A stretch of 64,000 nt of DNA from Podarcis bocagei. Lineage: Eukaryota. Positions 1,049 through 59,364 of the stretch are shown in pieces; positions within the stretch are counted from its first letter, which is position 1; each line of letters opens with the position of its first letter. Both the position numbers and the translations under genes were made by a program. Below the pieces are notes generated by a model, which was not told where the DNA came from, did not search any database, and saw only the letters and a program-made list of their open reading frames with translations. The DNA is taken from assembly GCA_964188305.1 (NCBI GenBank), contig OZ076890.1; one strand, written 5' to 3'.

Positions 1049-3298
<2,250 letters not shown>

Positions 3299-6200
3299 TA
3301 GGGGGCTTGCAGGGGGGGAAAGTTTCGGCTTGCAGCCGGGCAGCCCGAGCCTGTGCGGGTTTACTCGGAAGTAAGATCCACAGAAAGCAGCGAGGCTGGA
3401 CTTTTCCAGCGATGTGTGCATTGAGGAAAGGGTGGCAGCCTCGAAACGGAAACCGCAAAGTTCGGCCCCCGGCCATGTGGACTGCATCCTTAGACGCGGT
3501 TTCGTGGCGCGCGGAAAAGGCTCCCCAAATGTCTAACCGGGTCCGATCCTCGTTAGGAAATCTGACTAAATTGGAAGAGGGCTTAATTCGGAGTAAGTGG
3601 GCGTCGGATTGCAGCCATGCCGACGGCCCCTCGTGCAGGTTGACCTGGAAGCAAGACCCCTTTACAATAATTGAAGTTTACTTCGGAGGAAGTGTGCGCC
3701 CCGGCGCTGCCGTGTAGCGCGACCCTAAGCAGCTTTAAGTGAGGAATAAAGCCTACCGAGTTAAGGGAGACTTAGCCTTAGCACGTTGTCCTGTGCATTT
3801 TCCACCAAAAGCAAGCCACGTTCTGCTCAGTTGAGCTTATTTTCTTCTATCGAGTAGCAGCTACCGACATTTGCCTGGGAATACACCTCACTAAATTCAA
3901 TAGGACTTACTTCTGCATGGTTAGGATTGCCCTGAAAGTGCCACCCTGAACACTTAGGGTGCCATGGAGATATCTTTCCCATCCGTAATACACGGGTAGG
4001 CTGGCTTGTTTTATTTTCAAACAAACCCAAAACAAAAGTGGAATCTCCGTAAACTGCTCCATGTCTCTAAAACTTTAGTAAACAGGAGTGAATTCTCATA
4101 ATCACTTCACAGAGAAGGCATAATCAGCCTGTAGTAATAAGTTATCCTAAGTGTGCAAGCCTCGCTTAAGACCAAAGGCCACCTAGTATTATGTGCAAGA
4201 ACCGCAGAAACCAGCAGGCCTCAACTGGCCAGGGGTAGATAGACTTTCCACCCACCCTTCCCCTAATAGAGATTTCCCCATGAGAGAGAAGGCTACTTAC
4301 TGTACTTCCTACAATCACCCAGAACTTAACGCCTTCCTCCCGAAAGCACTGACTGACCTCCGAGCCTTAAACTCGACCTTCCTAAACCACTAAGAGTATT
4401 TGGAAGGAAATGCTCAATTGAATTCCGTGGGGCTTTCTCCCGAATAAACGCCTTCGGGGATGCCAGGCACAAACAGGCAAAGTAGAAAGGATCAAAGGAC
4501 TTCACGCCAGGAGGACAAGGAGTAACACGTGTAAGTAAATATCATGGAGGAGGAAATATTTCACGGGAAGATTGAGCTTAGACCTGCTTCCAGTCGCTCA
4601 GGATTCCTCCTCCCTCTAGGGAGTCAAAAGCAGTTACTGAATTAATACCCCAATTCCCAAAGCCCTTTAGCAGAAACACAGCGAGCCAAACCATTTTATT
4701 TTTTTTAAATCTACACACGCTTTCTCTTACCCACACTCTTTCATACGGCGTCCCTCCGAGCGTAGCCAGCTGGTGGATGGAGCAGGAAAAACCTAAGAAG
4801 GTATTTACGGGAGCAGAATTGTCCACGGTGCCAAGTAAGGAATTCACACACTAACACACACTACTTGATATCTATTACAATCTTAGACATGCTTCCATCA
4901 CAGCCAGCGGTATCTACGCGCAGATCTGACCTCAACAAGTGGTTATTTTAGAAATCCCGCTTGCTTCGTTTAGAAGTAAACACTGTTCGGTACCCTTAGG
5001 ATTACTTCTGCGTAAAGGCAGTTTGACTTAAAGCCGAGTGAAGCAAGCCTCGCAAGTGTAGTCTCGCAAGCATAAAGGCACACGCGAGATGAGGACCGGG
5101 CCTCTAGGGCTATTGAAGCCTCCTCATTCACATTTACGGTCTTTCGCTGAACGCAGAAAGGCCCTCTCCTTTCATGGCTGAGCTCTCACCATCTCTGCAT
5201 AGCTCAGGCTGGAGTACGAAAGGGAGGAGAGTTTTCTCCTTTCGGCCCCTGAAGTTCATTCACAAATCGCTACGACAGGCTGCGGCGGCCTCGCTGAATT
5301 CTGCGGGGACTGACTTGCGAGGAAACATTAATAGGATCGGTCTGCACGAAGAGTGCTGTAAAAGGAGGGAAAGGTTCTGGTGGGTTTTGTGCTTACATGT
5401 TGCGCGGGGGGGGGATACACACACACCCCTACATGCTGCGGAAGGAAGCAGACCCTTCAGCCGCTGAAGCTGCGCACCTGATTTGCGCCGGGGTCAGGGA
5501 GATCGCCCCTATAAAATAACTTAGGACTGGAAGGCGGGCTCAGCGCGAAGCACCTGCGAGCACCGCTTTGTAACTGAAGCCGCTCAAGCCGCTCCCACCC
5601 CCTCCGGGTGTCCCCAAAGGGATTAACATATAACTCAAGGTTGGCGTGGATTTCTTTTGTGTTTGGATCCCATATGTTGAGAGCACCCGCTGCAGCCGGC
5701 AGCTTAGTCCACGTGCATATAGTAGCAAATAGAAAACAGATACACGCAGATTTCCAGGCGTTTGAAATCGACCCCCTCTATTGGGTTATAATGCACGTGT
5801 GATAGTGACAAAAGCGTCCGCGTGCTTAAAAAAAATAAAATAAAAAATCCAAGTCCTTCAGGCCTAACTTTAAGAAACGCCAGAGCTGGAAGTATCCCTG
5901 CATATAAACAGATATTTCCCTTTGGATGTAAAACTCGCATTTGTTCGCACGGAACAAGTCAGCCCCCAGCAGAGTTTTAAAACGAAGCAGGACGGCTGAG
6001 TTTGCGTGTGTGTGGATGCAATCGCCTGGCATTCATCCATGAACAAATAAATAAATAAAGTAACAGAACACTCACTTTGCAAAAAAACAGCAAGGTTTCA
6101 TGACGGCCCCCACCCCCATTGCTCCAGAATAAGTTCTTTGACCTCTGCAGTAGCTCAGCGTTTGTGTTTTGAAGGTTTGCTCTTTCGGGAGGCGGGGAGA

Positions 6201-7781
6201 TGGTTGCTGCTTTCGGGCCTTGTGCTTCAAAACAGGAGACGGAACCCTCCCGTGGGCAAAACTTTGTGCCCAGCTCCTCTCGCTGCTTCCCAGGGAGTAA
6301 GACCCCCGATCCTGCATTCAGGAGGACTTCCTTCCCAGGGGACACGTGTAGGATCGATTTCAGTAGCCCGCTCAACCTAACAAATCTCCTTTCCCCCTTT
6401 AGAACCGGCTTAGCAAGTTTTAAAGGGGTGTTAAGATTTACCCTCGCCAACTCGGAGTCGAGGAAGACCCCGGGGTCTCCCCCCGCCCTCCATGACATCA
6501 GTGGTTCCCTTATATAGAGTAGGGGATTGCCCAAACCCAAGCCCTGCTCCTCGGCCCGTTCACACTTGTTCAGTCTGCCTGGCCCCTTCGCCCAAACATC
6601 CCAGGCGGAGCCATCCTAGCGCTCCCTGGAAGCACCTCTCTTCTCGCCCGCCCGGCCACTGTCTAGCCTGTTTTCAGCCTCTGGGAGCCCAGTGAAGGCG
6701 CCCCTCCTAGCCCAGGGCAAGCAGAGAGCCTGGGGCGAGTAGTTTCCTCTCTGGAAAGGCTTCCTTGGGTACGAGAGGCCTGCAGGTGGTTTTCCCTCTT
6801 GGCAGAAGCCACCCAAACGCGCTCACTGGAAGGCAGGCGTCTCCCTCCCTCCCTCACACTTTATTTCACCCCAAGGCTTCACATTTACTTGCAAGTAAAT
6901 CTAATCGAACCAAATGCGCGCAATACTTGGATCGGGTTGGCGGCCGCCTCTCTCAGCAACGCTTCCTCGGAGGACAGACCTTCGAAAGTGTGCTGGGCAC
7001 TTCTGAATCGACCCCAAAAAAACCTTTCATCTCTATGATCAGGACCCGATCCATTGGTTCTTGGCGGCGGATCGCCTTCACTGATGAAGGCGCAGAGGAA
7101 TCCGGAGTGAATCCGGAGCGAATGCCACGCTTGTCAATTTTATGCCTCCTTCCTCAAATTTGCTTGACCCGTCTGAATTTGCTTGGCCTCGAATCGCTGC
7201 CCACAGCCCTCCATAACCCATTCTCGTTTAAGTTTGGTCTGGAATAATTGTTGCACCCCCGACCTTAATAAATGGCCCTTGCCCCCAGTCCCTCATTTTT
7301 TGTGCCATTGGTTTTCATTGAGTGTACTTCCAAGAGATCTTGCTTATTTCGATTAATTCTTTTCCTAATTTAGCTACACTACTAAATTTACGTGGCCGTG
7401 GTAGCCAAATAGTGAGGAAAGTAGTCTGCCTTGTATTCCCCCATCCTAATGTCCCGCAAGCTGTTCCTGTTCAAGGGGAACTCAGAAAAAGCAAAGTTCT
7501 GCTTCAGGCTGGCTTCCGCAGCCTCCCGCCCTCCTTTTTTCTGGCTAAGCTTCACTTTTCTCACTTCCCTGCAGGCTGACAGCAGCCAGTACGTGCTTTT
7601 CTCTCCCTTCGAATTCCAGCAGAGCTTTTAAATAGCCACGATATTAAATCCGATTACCTGCCCGGGTCTCTTAAGTAGCAGCCAAGGAGGATGAGAAAGA
7701 TCTGTTCACACTGGTTCAGTTTCTTCCTTATTAGTTCCCAAAGGTGTTATTCTCCAACCAGCTTCAGTTTTAAGAACTTTT

Positions 7782-7940
7782 NNNNNNNNNNNNNNNNNNN
7801 NNNNNNNNNNNNNNNNNNNNNNNNNNNNNNNNNNNNNNNNNNNNNNNNNNNNNNNNNNNNNNNNNNNNNNNNNNNNNNNNNNNNNNNNNNNNNNNNNNNN
7901 NNNNNNNNNNNNNNNNNNNNNNNNNNNNNNNNNNNNNNNN
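7782..7940. other. Assembly gap (N run)
   Basis: 159 consecutive N. Confidence 1.
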
Positions 7941-10339
7941 AACAATGTCATATTACAGAAAGGATTCCATCACGCAATGCAAATGTGTGTGATTTAAGAA
8001 GAGAGAGTAAAAAAATGTTTATTGTTCAGGATTTTCCCTGCCCCAGAACACACACACCTTTGCAAGCAAGGGAACTTTGTCTTATATTATCAATAAATAT
8101 GTAACCCTTTGTAACAAACTGTTGCGGTCCTATGCATATTTGCCTATTCAGAAGTAAATCCCACTGTATTCAAGTCCTTCAACATATGCACACATAGAGC
8201 TTTGCAACCTAAAACAACCAAAATCAGTGTTTTTTAAAAAACCAGAAAATACTTGGGATGTGATGGGTGAAGAGGGATTAAACCAGACTCCTGCATATAA
8301 AACTGCTGAGATAGGCAGACTGTTAACAGTTCCCTTTTCCAGCTTCCCATCCTGCATACACTACTATTGGTGGGGTTTTTTTTATTATTCTGTCCCTCAA
8401 AAGAAAAGAAAAACCACCAATCCATAACTGAATAAATTCTCGGGAAGAACACCACAGACTGGATTTTTCTAGATTTTGCTTATATAATCTCCTCCTTGTA
8501 GGTATAACTATTTCCCACAACCAAGGAGTGTTGTTATTTAAATAATTTTGGGAATAATTATTATTTCTTTACATGTTCCCACAAGAGCTTGCCTTTCAGC
8601 ATTCTGACGCAGCAGATCAACAGTCCACTTCTTGTAGAAGAGTCCTAGTAAAGTTAAGGACTTAACTAGTTCTGCTATTTAAAACAAACCATCCATGGAC
8701 TTTCTGTTATTTACTACAGCAGATGGTAACTGCATACTTGCACACCACAAAGGCCAAAATCTACCAAATGAGAATACCTGGAATTACATCCCAGTCTTAA
8801 CTGTGCTTACATGGAAGTAAACACTATTGTTTCCAGTGACACTTACATCCAAGCAAGTATGGGAATATTGCCACATGGGAGACTGTGATCCTAAGTATGT
8901 TTGTATGGAAATAAGCCTCAGCTGGGTTCAGTATGACTTTCATGTAACTAAAGCTGTTGAAATAAATCACTGTGAACTCTGTGGGACTTACTCCTGAGTA
9001 AAAATATTTAGGATAGCAGTTTAATCTCTGTTCACTGGTTTGTCCTTAAGTCTTAACTCTTGCATTGCACCTTTACAACACTTAAAAAAAAGAGAAAAGA
9101 CAGAGCATTGAACTTCATCAGGGCTAATCTAAATAGTCGGATTTAATTGATCCATAGATTAGGTTGCTTTGCCCTAATCCCTTTGGAAACCTAGGATTTT
9201 CTGTCAAATTTAAGATGATGGCTGATATCTGACAAATGATAGAGAAGACTCATTTGATGGGTCAGCTCGGGGTATGGCTAATGTTGGCTTTTGCCTGTAT
9301 AAATTAAGTGAAAAAGAAAGATGATAAACTATCTGTTCCTAATGTTTGATAAATTGTAATAGAAAAGTACAATGGAGGATAAGATAATAATCTCATTCTT
9401 ACTTAAAATATCCCCTCCCCCCCAATTAGTGGGATACAGCAGTAAGATTTAGTTGTGCTGCAACTTTGAATTGTCTGTATTCCTTCTAGCTCATGTAGAA
9501 CATATTTTTATAAGCTGAACCGTCAAGCAGAAACACACGCACAGCCAGCTATCTCCAGTCAACAAGTTCTTACTTATCTGTTTAGTCTGTTTTATAATGT
9601 AAATGTTTGTGTTCTGTGCCTCTTTTACAGCTTTACTTGCCAGTCCCTTTCTCCTGGGCCCAGATATTTTTCTTTAGCGTCTTCCCAGAGTTTCCGGCAT
9701 TATGTTGTAAACACAGAGAGTTGAAAATATACTTTTTCTGTGGAGTTTTTTATTATTATTTTAAAAATGACCAAAGTTATTTTAAAAAAAACAACCAAAA
9801 GAAACACACCCACTAGTATGCATATCTAGAAAGACATGCATAGGATTAAATAATATTTTCAAATTGTGTTCCAATACACACTATAGTTTATTGACTTAGT
9901 AAAGCTATAATTCAGTTTGTCGGTGGGGAAAAAATAAGGTATTGCACCTGAAGTAATATTGCTAGAATGTCTAATTGTTGTTAACATCTTACAGTATTTT
10001 GACTAGGAAAAAATAATAATCAGTGTATAAGGGTACAATCCTAGCATTATTATTCTTATTCTTATTATGGGAAAAAATCTCACTGGGGGGAAATTGATCT
10101 TATTCTGAGGGATGTCTCACTGTGTTCAGTATCTGTTCCTAGGAATACAGCTTTATATCACAATTACAACCATGTTTATTCAGAAATAGGTTCAAATTGT
10201 TTCAGTAGCATTAGCCCTAATAAGTAATAATTCCTCACAAGACTGCAACCTTAAGCTAAAACATTTTTTCTTGGGGAGCCCAATTCATAGTTTGTCATTT
10301 GTCATTTGTCCTTGTCCTTCCTGCTAGAAGTTTCTAGAA

Positions 10340-10614: not shown

Positions 10615-11732
10615 CCTATGAGACCAAAGAGATGAGGAAGAAACAGGGCCTTATAGAGAGAGAAGCAGGAAAAAGGATGCTATTTTTGAGTTCAGGAGTT
10701 GCACTATTTGCACTAAAATCATAAAAGGTCACCATGCCCCAGTTTGCTGCCTGCCTTATTTCTCACTCAAACTTTTTGCCTGGTTCCTGCTTACCCTCAG
10801 ATGATTAGAAAAGAAAAACAGGAGCAGGTGAATGTAAAAAAAAGTGAATTGACTTGCATTTCATTGAAAGGACTAGGGCTGCTGAGGAAGGGTGGGTAGA
10901 GGGAAGTAGAATGCCCACTCTAAGCAGAAATTTCAACACCGGGCAGTTTCAGCAGAAGTGAAAAGAATGGTTTTTTTAAAGAAGTTGCCGCTTACTTGGA
11001 AGACAGGGGCCAAAACTCAAGTGGGGAGTGCAAAAGGAGACTTTGGCTCTGGGTCAGGTAGAGGGCTTCCGGCCTCCTGATTCTAAGCATGTTGTGTGGA
11101 AGGAAGTGCTGCTGGTTCACACTAGATTGCCATGGAGTACGCAAATAGATCAAGCTTCATCTACAATCACCAGCCTGAATTTAGAGGTTGTTGCTAGCTT
11201 ACATTTAGTCACTGCTTCAGCACAGCACTCCAAAATGCCACACTGCACTAATGCAACCACCCTTTTTTCAGTTTTATTGAAACCAATGGCATTTACTTCC
11301 AAAAAAATGTGTTTGAGATTCAGGTTTTGATTTCTTTATTGTGCCCGGTTAAATAGGGTGCTGTGTTTTAGCACCCTATTTACCAAAGAAATGTTATATA
11401 TATTCAGCTGCTTGGATATGAACTAAGCTAGCCACTATTAGGTCCCACTGAAATCTATGGGAAAAGCTAATCATGGCTAACTTAATTCCGATTGATTTTC
11501 AGTTGGACTTTAGTGCAACTAACTTAGGTTTCAATCCTAACCTTATGAACCTGAGTGTAAGTTTCATACTTCTAAGTGCTTAAGATTGTTAAACTTGCAA
11601 GTCTGTGTTCACCTGTATCCCGTCCCTCACCGCCCTATTAAAAAAATAATAATCCTATTTGACTTTTGCTTATAGTTTGCACCTTCAAATTATCAATAAG
11701 AAACTAATGGTGCTTCCATTTTATTCTTTTAG

Positions 11733-12002
<270 letters not shown>

Positions 12003-13593
12003 TAATCCCTTTTGCTTTCAATATAATTATATCGGAGTAAGCAGTTTCAGGATTACCGCAATTGAGGCCAACCAAAGTCCATATTGGTGGTATTGTAGTA
12101 AATGATTGCAGGATGTAGATCACTACCTTGTTTTTATGATGCATTTGTGCAACAAACATTACAGGCTGAATTGTGTATTGTTATCAGATGGTTTAGATCT
12201 GCCTTCAGAGCTATGGTACCATGATTTGTATCTGCTCGGTATTTAGCCAATAGTGTCGATGTAGAGCTCTGTATATCTCAGAAGTAGTGTTAGAAATCCC
12301 ATGTGAGCAGTTTTCTCATTCATTTCAGTAGAAAAGGGGACTGCAACAAACAGATCCTCAGTGAATGGGTGAAGCCAGTGTATAATGAAATTTTAATTAC
12401 TGAAATTAAAACATTGCTAATTATAAAGTTTGGTGACTGCAGAGTAGAGCCAGCTTGTTGTAGTTTGCTATTGTTATATATATTGGCAGTGGTGGTTTTC
12501 TGCAGAGAGGATTTTTCCTTCCTCCCCCTCCCCCTTCTTTAATGGTTCCATTTAATGGGTCTCTACAAGAAATAAGTATGCATTTGGTTTGTTACTTTAG
12601 CTTTAGCAACGCAGTTCATGATAGTGAGGTTAGGAATACAAAGAATGATAAATAGGCACCCACATATGTTGACATGGAAGTAAGATATGTTGATGTCAAT
12701 GAGACATGTTTCTAACTAATTATCCAATTTGTGAGACTTCTAAAAATGCACCATCTATATCATGGTTTAAACACACACACGCGCGCACACACACATATCT
12801 GTGTGACTAGGTTCAACTATTTCTTTTTATGCATTTGCATGGATATTGATACAGCCAGAAGAAACTCCCACAACTCTGGCAGATGGAAAAATGTTATTGC
12901 TATCATTGGAGGCGCTGCCAGCAATATCTGTGATTGCAAGAACTAAGCATTGTAGTGCTTTTCACATACTCACCTTACAGAGGATTCTCTCCATGTGGTG
13001 GAGAAGCTGACGGACATTGCATCCAATGTGTATATATGGTAACATGTTATTTGAGTGCTCCATGCATAGACCAATGTGTATATCAATTTGACTTATACGA
13101 CCTCTCCTTTTCTGAGAAGTAAAGATCTCATAAAATCAGACAGTTGGATCACATATTCCTTTATATGCAGGATGATAATGGTACACCCTTGCTCCCCCCT
13201 CTGCGAAGAGGATTCTAAGCTTGTTGAATACATGAATTGGTCTTATCTCTATATGAGCACATACCTGAGGAAGGCTGGGGCTGCTCACATAGCCTTTGCT
13301 ATGAATTGGCTCCTAGTCACAAATATAATTCATGAAAATTGCCTAGCTGGGTTGATTCTTGCTCCTTACTAATGTGCTGATTTTATCAGGACTGGGATTG
13401 GTCCTTTGATTTGTGCATCTAGCAGACTTGATTTCATTTTCTATGGAAACTAGCTTTTGATTTTTGATTATTAAATTTCTATACGGCTTAATATGTTAAA
13501 AATATCTCTAAGCCATGTACAAACAAACTTAAAGCGACAGCAGGCAAATGAAACAAAACATTACAAAAATACAGAGTTACATATGAAAATGTT

Positions 13594-13975
13594 CTAGTTA
13601 CAGGTAGGTAGCCATGTTGGTCTGCCATAGTCGAAACAAAATAAAAAAAATCCTTCCAGTAGCAGACTAAAACAGTACTATTACTTCTCTTGATCTAGAC
13701 ACTATACTTCTGTTGAGACAGCTTAGAATAACATTAGCTCTTTTGCTGCTGCATCACACTGTTGACTCATGTTAAGCTTGTGGTCCACTAAGACACCTGG
13801 ATCCTTTTCACATGTACTGCTAGTAAGCCAGGTGTCCATCTTATATTGGTGCAGCTGGTTTTTCTGGTGACTTCTGTTTCAGTGTATCTGAAGAAGTGTG
13901 CATGCACACGAAAGCTCATACCAATAACAAACTTAGTCGGTCTCTAAGGTGCTACTGGAAGGAATTTTTTTTATT
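13594..13975 (+). mobile_element. Penelope-like element insertion (inverted pseudo-LTR pieces) carrying a captured CR1 fragment
   Basis: 13-bp direct repeats ATATGAAAATGTT at 13581-13593 and 13976-13988. Inverted arms AAAAAAAATCCTTCCAGTAGCA / TGCTACTGGAAGGAATTTTTTTT. Contains a hammerhead motif; the middle (13661-13865) is antisense CR1. Confidence 0.75.
13884..13921 (+). ncRNA. Minimal type I hammerhead ribozyme motif (Penelope-like element type)
   Basis: GTAT-CTGAAGA-A-GTGTGC/AT/GCACAC-GAA-AGCT-C-ATAC: helix I GTAT/ATAC, CUGANGA core, helix II, GAAA, palindromic AGCU helix III, predicted cut after C13917. Confidence 0.75.
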
Positions 13976-16900
13976 ATATGAAAATGTTACATTGATACAA
14001 AGTTACTAATATACATTAATCAGTATCAATTAGTTTTCCTTCTGACACACTCTCCTCCTCAGCCTTCTGGTTCTCACCCAGGGTCCAAACAAACTCTCAG
14101 CTCACGCACAAAAATCTCACAACAAGAAAAGTTCCTGCAAACATTGGACATCACCCTAGTCTCTCACACTAGACATGCCTTCTATGGGCAGGCCCAAAGT
14201 GTATGGCACTTCCTCAGGTTGCCCACAGTCATTCAGCTGCACTCTGCACCCTCAATTCCAGGTACAGCAGGTTTGCTGAGTTTCCCAGGGGTCCAGAGGA
14301 TGTGAAAAGGGGCCCCCTCCACTCGCAGCTCTTTCTTCACCCACTATCCTCTTCTTCTTCAGCTGCTTTTTTTAAAAAGACCTCTGCCACTCACACACAT
14401 ACATGCTTCAGTTTTCTTTTCTGAAATGTGGTTGCTGCTTTTTAGCCTAATATGCAAAACTAGATGGTTTCTAAACCTGCCTGAGTTGCTTCTGTGAAGG
14501 AGATAATTGCTGGGGGAGAAATACCTGCAGTTGGAATTGTAGCTTGGTGATGCTAACGAATGATAATAATAGGGTAAAGCAGAGAAAATTATATCCATTT
14601 ACTGAAAACATGAGTGATGCTGTAATGTATAAAAGGATCAGTCATTAAACATGTTCAGTTGTTATATGGAAGGCTGCACCTTTTCAGTAAATGGAATTCT
14701 CATTATGATTCAGAGTGTTTAGAAAACATTTTGAAGATTTAAATGTAAAGCTGGTGAAGTGTTTGAGAAGCTAATAAAAACAGGCCTGCACTTTGGTAGT
14801 TGGCACCGTGCATAGAGCCAGAAATCAGAGTCTATGCAGTTCCTAAGGCCGCAATGAGAAAGTGAAGGAAGGAGCAGGAGCTGATCAGAAGAAAATTATA
14901 CGCCATTTATTTTACTAATTCTACTCAGTCACTTGTAACACCGATCACTTATGTATAGGAGTTGATATGCAAATAAAGATTGACTGTCAGAATAAGTTTA
15001 AGGAAGTGATAATCTTTGGCAGGTTGCATGCTAACTATTCAGGTCTGAAGTTTTGGTTCCTATGGGCAATACCAATTTTGAATGAGTGACTAATATATGC
15101 TTTTGTTTATTCATACAACCCTGAACTGTTTCCTAAAGGTGTGGCTGTTTGCACTGGTTTCTGGCATTCTTTTATTGCATTGGCTTAAAGTGTGAGGACT
15201 AAGGCAGTTTGCGTCAAAGGTCATGAAATGCAGACAGGGAAATGAACTTCTGTTAGAGCTGTGTGATGTTTCTCTGTGCATGAAGCTAGCTGCTCGAAAG
15301 CAGTACTGTAATGTGAATAAACAATATGCAAAACAGGATGCAAAGGATGACTGAAAATTAGATATGTGCATATGATTTGTAACTGAAATTAACTAAAATA
15401 ACTGGTGTAGAACTAGGGCTGCACCATATATTCTCTGCTTTTGATTTGAGGCAAGAACAAGTGGAAATTTCATCTGTAAAATACTTAGGCAGTGTGACTA
15501 TTCCCTATTGTTCAGTCGTGGTCAGCAGTTTTATTTCTCTTGGCTGTTGCTTCTTTCTCCTCCAGGATTACATTGGTGATTCCACTCAGTCAGGGATTCT
15601 GAATAGTGAATGTGATAATGTCACAATGCTAGGTACCCAATCAGATTTTGCTGCATGGTGATGCCATTGAGACAACTGAGGGCAATTTACAAGAATAAGC
15701 AACCATCCCTCCCCACTTACAAGGAGTGCTGAAAAATCATCAGCAAAAGAGGAATTTTTTTACTGCCAAAAATGTTAATGGGAAACAGTAAGTTGCATTG
15801 GCTCAGCTGTACGTGTAGCTGTCCAGAACAGTTTTAAGCAATGAAATGACAATGCAAGTTCATACCTATTTTTCACTGTTGTGCAGAATTATTGGTAGTC
15901 TAATATTCCGCACGAGAGGGTAAATCACAATACCCAACCACCATAACAATTAGACCTGCAGCCACCTGATCTGAATAAGTCTGTAGACTTCAGTGACACT
16001 TGAATAATACCAGGAAAATGGGAAATAGACGAATTGCTGGGTCAGTCTTTTTACTCATTACTATATTTCACATTGGCAGTTTGAAGAACTTCTTTATATA
16101 CATACACATTTCATTTACTTGAGAGACTTACGAGACAGAGGGAATTTTAACTGATTTCATGCTGTATCCCTAATGCACACCTCTTAGAAACTGCTTATAA
16201 ATTATAAAAACAAAGAACGCAATATCTATTGCAAGTATTCAGTCATATCTAACACTACACTTTAATCACTTCAGTTGCAGTTTTGAAGCAGTTGGTTTTT
16301 ACTGCTACAGTATTGCTAAACATAGTAAAATCCCCATTATTTCAATCAACTCAACCTCATTATTTCAATCAATCAACTCATAGTGGGTGGGGAAACCCAA
16401 CCAGATGGGTGGGGTATAAATAATAACAAAAATAATAAAACCTCTTGTTATTTCTTGTCCAATGTGCTTCATTGTCTACAGAACTCTACTTCACTACATT
16501 TGCCTGAATTTTAACATACTGCGTACAGGATTGCCCCCTAATGTTATGGAAGCTTAGACTCACTAAAGTCAAAACTGGATACAGGATTATAGGTGTAATG
16601 TTCTGGATCTGGATGCCCACCACATGTTTTGGAAATATTAGCTGTTGTTGTGCAGTATTCCATTCATCATTCTGTATTTTAAAAGTGACTTTATTCTCCT
16701 CATACTAAGCTCAAAAGATGAGAATAGATCCTTATAAACAAATAGAATTGTATTTGACAGTTTTGGCTTGACTTCCAATACCAAACACTGCTTAGGAATT
16801 AGCAATTTTTGCCTTGTGCCAGCCCATTGCTGATAAAACCTGCCTTTCTAGCCTGTACTACTGGCACCAGAGTCCCAGAACACCTGGAAGGAGGTGCCAC

Positions 16901-34195: not shown

Positions 34196-34345
<150 letters not shown>

Positions 34346-56475: not shown

Positions 56476-57090
56476 GTTTAAAAGGTAGTAAACATTACTA
56501 GATCAGTGAATGCTTCTTCACTTCAGATTCTTAGCAGAACATATTTACTATATGGACACAGAAGTAAGAGTTAGAAAATGTTTTGCCATGCTTTTTCTTC
56601 TTTGAGCCATTCTGGTATATTCATGTGCGCTCATCTGACAGATCTTTGGCAAGGTACAATAACGCTGTTTCCTGCCTAGACTATTACACTTAATCAGCTG
56701 CAGAAAACTAAATTAATTGTTTGGCAATAAGGTGAGAAGATAATTCTCCAACACAAGGGATTATCTTTTCACAGGTCAGAGAGATAATATCCTGTTTTGA
56801 GAGTCTAGCAAATTATCATAGGATTGTTTGCCTACTAATTGGTTGATTTGCAGAATGCTGATGACAGAAAAGCCAATTGCTGCAGGAAACTAATAAGTTG
56901 TAATCTGCAGTTAGGAAGGCAACCTGCATCCAAAGCAGTTTGCATCACAAAGCCATTGTCCTGTAGATAAATGAGCACTGAGAAAATCTCAAAGAGTCTC
57001 ATTTGAATATTGGCTTACGCCTCCTACATTCTATCTTAAAGGCTCAACAGATGCAGATACTGGATGGTTTGAACACCAACCATTTCTTTC

Positions 57091-57215
57091 TCGAAATAAA
57101 TTAAAAAATTAAAAAATTGTCTGGTAGCACCTTAGAGACCAACTAAGTTTGTTCTGGGTATAAGCTTTCATGTGCATGCACACTTCTTCAGATACACTGA
57201 AACAGAAGTCACCAG
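57091..57215 (-). mobile_element. Penelope-like element terminal fragment
   Basis: Same sequence family as 13866-13972, with a hammerhead motif; abuts the 5' end of a truncated CR1. Confidence 0.7.
57158..57195 (-). ncRNA. Minimal hammerhead ribozyme motif, second copy (antisense to RUNX1)
   Basis: Reverse complement reads GTAT-CTGAAGA-A-GTGTGCATGCACAT-GAA-AGCT-T-ATAC. Confidence 0.7.
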
Positions 57216-57892
57216 AAAAACCAGCTGCACCAATATAAGATGGACACCTGGCTTACTAGCAGTACATGTGAAAAGGATCCAGGTGTCTTAGTGGACCACA
57301 AGCTTAACATGAGTCAACAGTGTGATGCAGCAGCAAAAAAGCTAATGCTATTCTAAGCTGCCTCAACAGAAGTATAGTGTCTAGATCAAGAGAAGTAATA
57401 GTACTGTTTTAGTCTGCTCTAGACACCTGAAATCCTGTGTCTAGTTCTGGGCATCACAATTTAAGGAGGATACTGACAAGCTGGAATGTGTGCAGAGGAG
57501 GGCAACCTAGAAGAACAAGGTTTGGAAACCAAGCCTTATGAGGAATGGTTGAGGGAGTTGGGTATGTTTAGATTGGAAAATAGGAGATATAGTACCCATC
57601 TTCAAAAATCTCAAGGGCTGCCACATGGAAGGTGGAGCGAGTTTGTTTTCTCCTGCTCTGGAGGGTAGAGCCCAAACTGATGGATTCAAGTTACAAAAAA
57701 GGAGATTGTGACTGAACATCAGGAAGAACTTTTTGACAGTAAGAGCTGCTTGACAGTGGTGGTCTCGAGGTTTTTAAGCAGAGGTTGGATGTCCATCTTT
57801 CATGGATGCTTTAGTTGAGATTCCTGCATTGCTGAGGGGTGGACTAGATGACCCCTTGGGGGTCCCTTCCAATTCTACAGTTCTATGATTCT
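57216..57892 (+). mobile_element. 5'-truncated CR1 LINE
   Basis: Degenerate ORF2 C-terminal sequence (AAGCTTAACATGAGTCAACAGTGTGATGCAGCAGC..., CTGGAATGTGTGCAGAGGAGGGCAAC...) and CR1 3' end GGTCCCTTCCAATTCTACAGTTCTATGATTCT. Confidence 0.9.
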
Positions 57893-59364
57893 TAACCACT
57901 GTAGTATCCTACCTGTCTAAATAAAGTGCCACTTAACAACCACTGTAGATTATAATAGCCCCTAACAACAGAAATGTTTAAAAATTAAGTGATATTCATC
58001 ACCACTGCCTTTAACAGGGTTACCTGCTCAATGGGAACATTCCTCCTTTTAAGAATTCTTAAAATTGCAGCTTAAAGATATCAAGAGATTAGGTTGCATA
58101 GTGCTATACCATCCAGGCTCCCTTCTAAACTGAAAGTTGAATTTTAGTTTGGCCTGACTTGACCAAGAGGGAAAGTGTCTGCTGCTTTGTTTTGCTCCCT
58201 CACTTCAGTTGCACCATGAAATAGGAGGTTGTATTTCACCTGCCTGCCACTTATCACTTTGACAGTTCTGAGCACTTAATTAATTCAGAGGAGTGGGTGT
58301 AGCCCTGGCTCATGAAGTCCTTGTAATACACTGCAGAAAGTGCAATGCTCCTTCCTTTCCGGAATTCAAACATTGGACTTAGACCAAGGAGGTAGTTTGT
58401 GAAGCTCACTGGGAAACTTTGGGCCAATGAGATCTATGGTCTGACTACTCTTACATGGTAGTTGTAAAGATGAAATGGTGAGGATTAGGGGTGAGCCTGT
58501 ACCCTTCCCTGAACTCCTGGGGGTGGGGGGATTAAAGGAGTTGTGGGTTGGATTAGAACTAAGGCTAATTGAACTTGGATCACACTGAAATCAATAGGAT
58601 GCGGAAGTCATGACGTGCATGCCATTGATTTCAGTGGGAACTAAGTTTAGCTAAGTTTGTCTGGATCCAGCCCAGAATATATTACTTGGGCTCTTTAGTG
58701 TAGAATAAGAAAGCCAGGTGAGTTTTATTTAGTGTGTAAAATACAAGCAGAAGCAGGTATGCTTCTTATACAAGACTTTAGATGCACTCCGAACTGTGGA
58801 CACATCATAGTCGAGACCTTATGCTTGTGATATTGATGTTCTTTTTTATTGGCTTTTGAAGCATAGTATGGGCCCATGAATAACCCAGTTGTTACGAAGA
58901 TTAAAGGTGTGTGTTGCAAAACTCTGGTAAATAAAATCTCTCTTAGTCTTTCACTGACAAATCCAGTTTTACTCTCCATTGAATTCTTTTTTTAAAAGAC
59001 TGTAATCTCCACGTTGGCAGAACACTTCATAGCTTGTTAGCAGAGCTTGAATTACCTCCCATGGTAAATACAACAAAAATTAATAAATAAGAACACCTTA
59101 AAGGCAAATGCTCACTGAATCAAATTCGTGCACACTGTGGCATGTGTGCTCTTAAGTGGTGCAGGACACACTCCAAAGAGCCATATTTTGAGCTCCACAG
59201 CCCTTGAATTCTTTGATTTCCGAAAGCAGCCAACAGTACCCACACGGTGATCCTCTTTGAAAACCAGGAGGCTTTCAAAACATATGTTTGTGAGATGAGG
59301 AAGGGGCTGTTCAAAGGCATTTCTCAAAAATCAAAATCCCTTCTTGGTTTATACAAGACAATTA

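Follow-up and report, generated by a model that had tools for sequence, protein, structure and literature searches.

A Penelope-like insertion in a RUNX intron of Podarcis bocagei with an apparent templated patch from beside a resident copy 43.5 kb away

The DNA analyzed here, hereafter called the window, is a 64-kb stretch from Podarcis bocagei. The window was confirmed to contain a RUNX gene on the + strand, with the Runt-domain coding exons listed in Table 1; we take the gene to be RUNX1. From the positions of these exons, an insert at 13.6 kb and a related site at 57 kb sit in two successive RUNX1 introns, in accordance with an earlier, sequence-only reading of this DNA that had assigned them to two separate introns of the same gene. 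The DNA that hosts the insert (13449-13570 and 13998-14363) is a low-copy repeat, present at ~5-30x the unique baseline at an identity of at least 90%. A run of N (7782-7940) was left out of the analysis. For comparison with related lizards, raw reads at ~1-2x from two organisms (X24 and X23) and contigs of two further relatives (X13 and X14) were aligned to positions 12900-14700. The read depth over the unique flanks was about 0.9 for X24 and 1.9 for X23.

The insert comprises 382 bp (13594-13975) bracketed exactly by a perfect 13-bp direct repeat, the target-site duplication (TSD). Its layout is that of a head-to-head mini-insertion of a Penelope-like element (PLE), in which the left arm is an antisense 3′ end with the optional tail and the right arm is in sense orientation and without the tail. 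Between the arms lie ~200 nt of antisense CR1 and ~20 nt of PLE, and the joint between them is precisely the one present at 57.2 kb. The optional tail would begin at the point where the right arm stops, and one other locus among the X14 contigs (record 14) also stops at 13975. The inverted arms are 95% complementary over 22 nt (13643-13664 and 13950-13971) and can be extended to 22-26 nt (13640-13664 and 13950-13975). When the insert was folded as single-stranded DNA or RNA, the arms paired over 25-26 nt (z = -3.7 versus shuffles). In the sense RUNX1 pre-mRNA, the insert would form a loop of ~285 nt closed by a short A/U-rich stem, to which no function is attached here.

Table 1. Coordinates of the features at the insert, at the donor locus and in the host gene. 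Positions are those of the window.
Feature	Position	Strand	Remarks
Runt-domain coding exons	about 2855-3301, 11740-11900, 34210-34320	+	MRIPVD… corresponds to a P2-type first exon; VALGDVPDG…
Left TSD copy	13581-13593		ATATGAAAATGTT; AT-rich target; 100% identical to the right copy
Left arm, last 71 nt of the PLE 3′ end, antisense	13594-13664	-	optional 'tail' of ~44 nt at 13594-13637; canonical terminus of the family at 13596
AGCA microhomology between the left arm and the donor-derived tract	13661-13664		common to PLE (reverse complement TGCT of …aaggTGCTactgg) and donor CR1 (ctagAGCAgacta)
CR1-derived patch, antisense CR1	13665-13862	-	apparent copy of window 57217-57414
PLE sense segment identical to donor 57171-57216	13863-13908	+	no mismatch; its joint with CR1 is that of the donor (2-nt overlap TC)
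Minimal hammerhead-like motif	13884-13921	+	helix I GUAU/AUAC, CUGAAGA, 5-bp stem II, then GAAAGCUC; direct reading
Outer right arm, probably a non-donor PLE tail	13909-13975	+	47 nt with 5 mismatches, divergence beyond; 25 of the final 26 nt agree with the left arm
Right TSD copy	13976-13988		second copy of the 13-bp duplication ATATGAAAATGTT
Resident donor PLE 3′ fragment	57100-57216, possibly to about 57049	-	5′-truncated at the same PLE position as the insert
Resident 5′-truncated CR1, sense	57215-57893	+	679 bp to the natural 3′ end …ttctacagttctatgattct (57874-57893); head-to-head with the PLE fragment

Concerning the repeat families to which the parts of the insert belong, the PLE core (13876-13936) was covered to depths of ~8,900 and ~11,600 in the two read samples, equivalent to roughly 6,000-10,000 copies at an identity of at least 90%. 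The tail arm (13571-13631) was represented by about 1,900-3,100 copies and the CR1 piece by a few hundred to about 1,500, so both the PLE tail and the CR1 subfamily are abundant repeats. Just before 13863, 1890 and 2161 reads were clipped, and they shared one upstream consensus (agreement 0.86) unlike the CR1 found here, while contigs of the CR1 family reached the 13862-13864 point and then followed a different consensus of their own. Since the canonical PLE diverges upstream of 13863 and the CR1 consensus ends there, 13862-13864 is a specific PLE/CR1 joint that occurs in neither family. The sequence-only reading had described the same Penelope/CR1 junction at both loci; the sameness was upheld, and the position was corrected with the family reads to 13862-13864, with a 2-nt overlap TC.

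The family reads also defined the ends of the element. Before the PLE family terminus at 13596, 956 and 1432 reads were clipped, with unrelated flanks. Reads leaving the right arm at 13967-13975 resumed on the opposite strand at 13637-13651 (e.g., 13637 joined to 13972), which means that canonical copies pass from the right-arm sequence directly into the reverse complement of the left arm. This run-on from 13972, together with the terminus at 13596, indicates that the extra ~44-nt tail is present only on the left arm. On the 5′ side, 914 and 1232 reads started exactly at 13884 next to unrelated A/T-rich flanks, which marks a sharp family-wide hot spot of 5′ ends, and in X14 contigs from other loci an inverted tail arm ending at 13611-13666 was joined to 13882-13901 via 2-31 nt of filler. 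From these read starts and joints it can be concluded that head-to-head mini-insertions, with the sense arm starting from 13884, are the common form of this PLE family. The insert at 13.6 kb reads as one such ordinary mini-insertion, the filler of which (13665-13883, 219 nt) would be a templated copy of the donor, i.e., ~20 nt of PLE and its CR1 flank.

PLEs of the Penelope/Poseidon type encode a telomerase-like RT and a GIY-YIG endonuclease in a single ORF. Only about 115-160 nt of the PLE 3′/pLTR region are present in the window, where neither an RT/EN ORF nor a longer copy of the family was found. The assignment to PLEs is proposed on structural hallmarks: the left arm extends ~44 nt past the stop of the right arm, and family reads continue from 13972 and end at 13596; the arms are inverted and 5′-truncated, and in many contigs of the family 13882-13901 is connected with an inverted tail arm; and the 13-bp TSD (ATATGAAAATGTT) lies in an AT-rich context. 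The PLE protein of the anole (PAc) cuts and extends both target strands, and its reverse transcription starts at two internal sites (PMC11167929). The optional 30-40-bp 'tail' of PLEs is the sequence between these two start sites, and the targets are AT-rich (PMC11167929). Adjacent inverted and 5′-truncated PLE copies are common, and the tail is often found at one end only (PMC8557442). Both arm ends of the insert match this published pattern, in which the two strands both prime and one end carries a tail, a correspondence that the sequence-only reading had missed.

A hammerhead ribozyme motif is typical of the pLTR/ORF-start region of such elements. The hammerhead-like motif of the right arm, with CUGAAGA, stem II and GAAAGCUC, parallels the CUGAGGA…GAAACGUC of Poseidon_Ac. 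An Rfam scan of 13300-14300 at E ≤ 1 returned neither a hammerhead nor any other family, so the ribozyme label is based on the reading of the motif. The fold of the motif was no better than those of shuffles (z -0.46). The 5′ edge of the minimal motif is at 13884, and a hammerhead cut was considered as the cause of the stop of the right-arm cDNA at that position. The cut of Poseidon_Ac follows GAAACGUC; by analogy, the cut would be expected here after 13917 and not at the 13884 hot spot.

The relationship between the insert and the 57-kb site was studied by realignment. Positions 13661-13955 are the ungapped reverse complement of 57124-57418, with 8 mismatches in 295 nt (13718, 13731, 13740, 13909, 13917, 13923, 13925 and 13938). 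Three of them fall in the first 248 nt, and the other five are clustered in the final 47 nt (Fisher p = 0.0032, binomial p = 0.0038). Past both ends of the match the ungapped identity is lost, and gapped BLAST extends it only to 13970/57111. All this agrees with the sequence-only reading, which had reported the match with its eight mismatches, the excess of these in the distal ~47 nt compared to the other ~248 nt, and the difference between the two PLE ends beyond it; the 13-bp TSD, which proved to be perfect, and the AGCA at 13661-13664, which the inverted arm and the matching donor sequence have in common, were equally found where it had described them. BLAST of the insert and of the donor against the window detected no third copy of either part.

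Within the CR1 part, the insert differs from the donor at 3 private positions, and both window copies carry G13717, T13723 and G13799 versus 85-97% of the CR1-family reads. The sharing of these variants makes the 13.6-kb and the 57-kb copies each other's closest relatives. The CR1 at 57 kb is continuous over 679 bp, whereas ~200 nt of it are found at 13.6 kb inside a TSD-flanked insert, which argues that the copying ran from 57 kb to 13.6 kb. These alignments support a copying of the patch, ~220-250 nt, from beside a resident PLE 43.5 kb away, a distance that the sequence-only reading had rounded to 43 kb. The possibility that two PLEs had inserted separately at one and the same position of CR1 was also considered; it was rejected on account of the presence of only ~200 nt of CR1 inside one TSD-flanked insert and of the shared private variants.

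CR1 LINEs contain the coding region for the C-terminus of ORF2, have an octamer-like (ATTCTRTG) microsatellite at the 3′ end behind it, and undergo 5′ truncation. At the donor locus, the ORF pieces …EKDPGVLVDHKLNMSQQC… and …WLRELGMFRLENRR… look like the C-terminus of CR1 ORF2, and we take the 57-kb ORF pieces and the 3′ end …ttctacagttctatgattct to be CR1. A Pfam scan of the three donor ORF pieces gave no match, so this label is based on the resemblance of the ORF pieces and on the 3′ end motif. The template of the patch corresponds to 57217-57418 within this resident CR1. The tail of the donor PLE is of a second common type (…gacaattttttaatttttt…), and family reads (n = 1275 and 1340) run on after 13959 with CAATTTTTTAATTTTT…. 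Regarding the formation of the donor, the canonical PLE upstream 30-mer, taken from the reads, was absent from the window, which indicates that the CR1 did not split a longer PLE there. The donor PLE (-) and CR1 (+) stand head-to-head with a 2-nt overlap. A search for a TSD around the composite yielded nothing convincing, only a motif like the CR1 3′ end on the left flank; this flank (57028-57040, ATTCTATCTTAA) resembles the CR1 3′ end at 57880-57895. The donor composite could be the product of a hybrid event primed on both strands or of CR1 priming at a look-alike target.

The right arm of the insert is a mosaic. After 13955 it reads …ctggaaggaattttttttatt, which matches the left arm at 25 of 26 positions and is unlike the donor tail …ccagacaattttttaatt…. 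From this match to the left arm in the place of a match to the donor, it is concluded that the outer right arm and the left arm go back to PLE RNA of one kind. By this comparison, the non-donor outer part would span at least 13956-13975 and probably 13909-13975, and the donor-derived inner part would be 13661-13908. The switch point would fall within 13741-13955, most likely in the segment 13863-13908 that is identical in both. At 13938, the insert has a C that forms a CpG, versus a T in the donor and in 99% of ~11,000-14,000 family reads per sample; this C is a private variant of the insert copy or of the source RNA.

In organisms F and G, whose flanks diverge from the window by 2.3-2.5%, contigs cross the left flank and the TSD into the left arm (X13 record 2 up to 13619; X14 record 9 up to 13617). 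The insertion is therefore genuine, not a product of the assembly, and older than the separation of these species. The sequence-only reading had proposed to look in related species for an empty site at 13581-13593; neither such a site nor an intermediate state was found in the contigs of the relatives, two of which carry the left junction. Two X14 joints that skip the insert (13584 to 13976 and 13569 to 13981) were considered as orthologous empty alleles and rejected, as their extra letters and 1.4-2.2x depth point to paralogues of the host low-copy repeat. The contigs of X14 record 10 begin to match exactly at 13661 and look like the donor locus in relatives.

With moderate confidence, we favor the interpretation that the structure arose from one PLE insertion, in which the nascent cDNA paired with a resident PLE, copied its flank and was sealed at AGCA. 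Both nicked target strands would prime reverse transcription, and nicks 13 bp apart would generate the 13-bp TSD. The top-strand 3′ OH at 13593 would copy the last 71 nt of the PLE RNA from the 'tail' start site, thus producing the left arm, and the bottom-strand 3′ OH would copy the same kind of RNA from the tail-less upstream start at 13975, inward to a point between 13909 and ~13884. There, near 13884-13908, this second cDNA would have run off or come off its RNA, and its free 3′ end could pair with the resident PLE located 43.5 kb downstream in the next RUNX1 intron. Extension on the resident DNA would add ~20 nt from the end of that PLE and about 200 nt of CR1 flank (~220-250 nt), after which the extended cDNA would be joined to the left-arm cDNA at the 4-nt microhomology AGCA. 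The net product would be a patch templated as in synthesis-dependent strand annealing (SDSA-like) and sealed by microhomology-mediated end joining.

Several observations bear on this proposal. The patch lies within a TSD-flanked insert and duplicates a segment in cis (13665-13862 and the PLE 13863-13908 are the reverse complement of 57171-57414). It is contiguous with a resident PLE identical over 13863-13908, and AGCA is at the resolving joint. A switch of a new Penelope cDNA onto the resident copy by homology, followed by copying of its CR1 flank, is what the sequence-only reading had put forward. It stands as the most economical reading, supported by the anatomy of the insert, the direction of copying, the mosaic right arm and the microhomology, although an event during integration and a later repair would look the same in the sequence. 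We infer that the end which invaded was that of a nascent cDNA and not one from a subsequent break, that DNA served as the template, and that the switch took place at the favored site. The required polarity of the template, the window minus strand at 57 kb, is that of DNA or of RNA antisense to RUNX1. The sequence-only reading had taken the event to imply that the two introns were physically close; they may have been, and 43 kb in cis is close anyway.

The same final structure and donor polarity would also result if a plain PLE mini-insertion had come first and a double-strand break between its arms had later been repaired by invasion of the right-arm end into the homologous 57-kb PLE, with DNA synthesis running on into the adjacent CR1 and joining at AGCA. 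This course of events seems to us rather unlikely. The inverted arms can pair and may be fragile, but they overlap by just 26 nt, which makes a weak palindrome. The divergence between copy and donor in the donor-derived tract (3/248 = 1.2%) is below that of the flanks compared to the relatives in which the left junction is present (2.3-2.5%), a weak hint of a younger patch, but the difference is not significant (Poisson P ~0.16). Moreover, a later repair requires a second rare event at one spot of ~100 bp, whereas the integration itself makes two free 3′ ends for the host to join, and the short fillers at the same joint in other copies show that patchwork is routine there.

Improbable, in our estimation, is a dispersed chimeric family or a third source, in which a CR1 fragment fused to a PLE tail, at the 57-kb locus or elsewhere, would be transcribed and retrotransposed by the PLE machinery, with the window copies as two of its members. 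It is true that the donor fragment retains the PLE 3′ region used by the PLE protein, but a retrocopy of it would bear the donor-type tail, while the outer end of the right arm is of the other type, like the left arm. The reads with G at 13717 were 2/59 in X24 (~0.9x), as two loci predict, and at most 15/102 in X23 (~1.9x), where two loci would give ~4 and the 15 non-T reads speak in favor of the family; they amount to about 2-8 copies' worth, a number that bounds the carriers of this one shared private variant. A donor taken at random among the ~6,000-10,000 PLE tails of a 1-2 Gb genome would lie within 43.5 kb with a probability of ~6e-5, and even over 712 windows of this genome such proximity is expected only about 0.02 times; for a small family, two members so close to each other are likewise very unlikely (~6e-5 per copy). 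Besides, the donor CR1 reaches its own natural 3′ end and is head-to-head with the PLE, which argues that the composite formed in place. Still less credit is given to a jump onto RUNX1 pre-mRNA, by which the left-arm cDNA would have switched at AGCA to sense intron RNA at 57418, copied it as far as the antisense PLE tail and then, by the PLE homology, found the cDNA of the right arm. The polarity fits: the gene is transcribed from the + strand, and a cDNA of that strand has to be made on + sense RNA, starting at 57418 and going down. In L1, reverse transcriptases are well known to jump at microhomologies of a few nt (PMC11702581). However, for a landing guided by 4 nt to fall ~250 nt from an antisense PLE tail would be a chance of ~1e-3 at the observed PLE density, whereas if pairing by homology came first, the PLE tail itself would account for the choice of donor. 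If it were true, a retroelement reverse transcriptase would have used the unspliced transcript of the host gene at the integration site. As to a chimeric join of repeat reads inside the insert made by the assembly, inverted and tandem PLE structures are known to trouble assemblies (PMC8557442). Even so, an artefact is barely credible: the 382-bp insert is framed in its entirety by the perfect 13-bp TSD, two other species provide independent contigs that span the left TSD into the arm, and the 3 private differences between insert and donor in the CR1 part show that the insert is not a pasted duplicate.

Returning to the patch copied during integration, it would suggest that free cDNA ends of PLEs can search for homology, pick a nearby resident copy in cis and duplicate ~200 bp of its unrelated flank. 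It represents a known kind of event, that of the L1 templated insertions, in a new element class, and offers a clean natural example fixed in several lizard species. A side reaction of the L1 type would thereby be extended to a third class of retroelement, the integration chemistry of which is still poorly known, and the patch agrees with recent biochemistry, in which priming by PLE proteins was found on both strands. Were patches of this sort common, their donors would constitute a natural record of the sites that were close at the time of insertion, and the patches would be a minor source of local duplication in PLE-rich genomes; a single case changes little.

Compared to canonical complex PLE insertions (PMC8557442, PMC11167929), the insert shares the head-to-head arms, the tail on one arm, the AT-rich target with TSD, the strong 5′ truncation and, tentatively, the hammerhead-like motif adjoining the 3′ region. 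It differs in the long inter-arm patch templated from another locus, which is unmentioned in those published descriptions; a search of the PLE literature brought up no case in which a resident copy at a distance had served as the template of a long patch. The nearest parallel is found in L1. 'Templated insertions' of L1 that duplicate a nearby genomic segment are credited to SDSA-like pairing of the growing cDNA with homologous DNA (cited in bioRxiv 10.1101/2024.08.27.596794). The likeness includes a TSD-flanked insertion with a non-element patch at the 5′-side joint, a nearby donor in cis, resolution at a microhomology and the proposed cause, i.e., a growing cDNA that leaves its RNA and pairs with homologous genomic DNA. 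The differences are that the element is here a PLE with element 3′ ends at both insert ends, that the donor is 43.5 kb off and was evidently chosen through ~25-90 nt of homology to a resident copy, and that the event is an ancient one of the germ line, fixed in more than one species, while those of L1 are somatic or were obtained in cell culture.

Other descriptions for L1 concern twin priming, template switches and resolution by microhomology (PMC11702581). As in L1 twin priming, two cDNAs would here come from the two strands of one staggered break, with the TSD kept and a microhomology at the inner joint. However, the second primer in L1 anneals by microhomology anywhere in the RNA, and the arms are adjacent RNA segments (PMC11702581), whereas both arms here begin at the defined start sites of the element and overlap by 26 nt. 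With the chimeric retrocopies formed by template switching, such as U6/L1 and L1-mRNA (PMC6789731, PMC13174262), the insert has in common the foreign sequence at the 5′ side. Those chimeras combine two RNAs in the same orientation from dispersed sources, while the partner here is a genomic junction nearby that includes a copy of the element itself, and the polarity of the template points to DNA.
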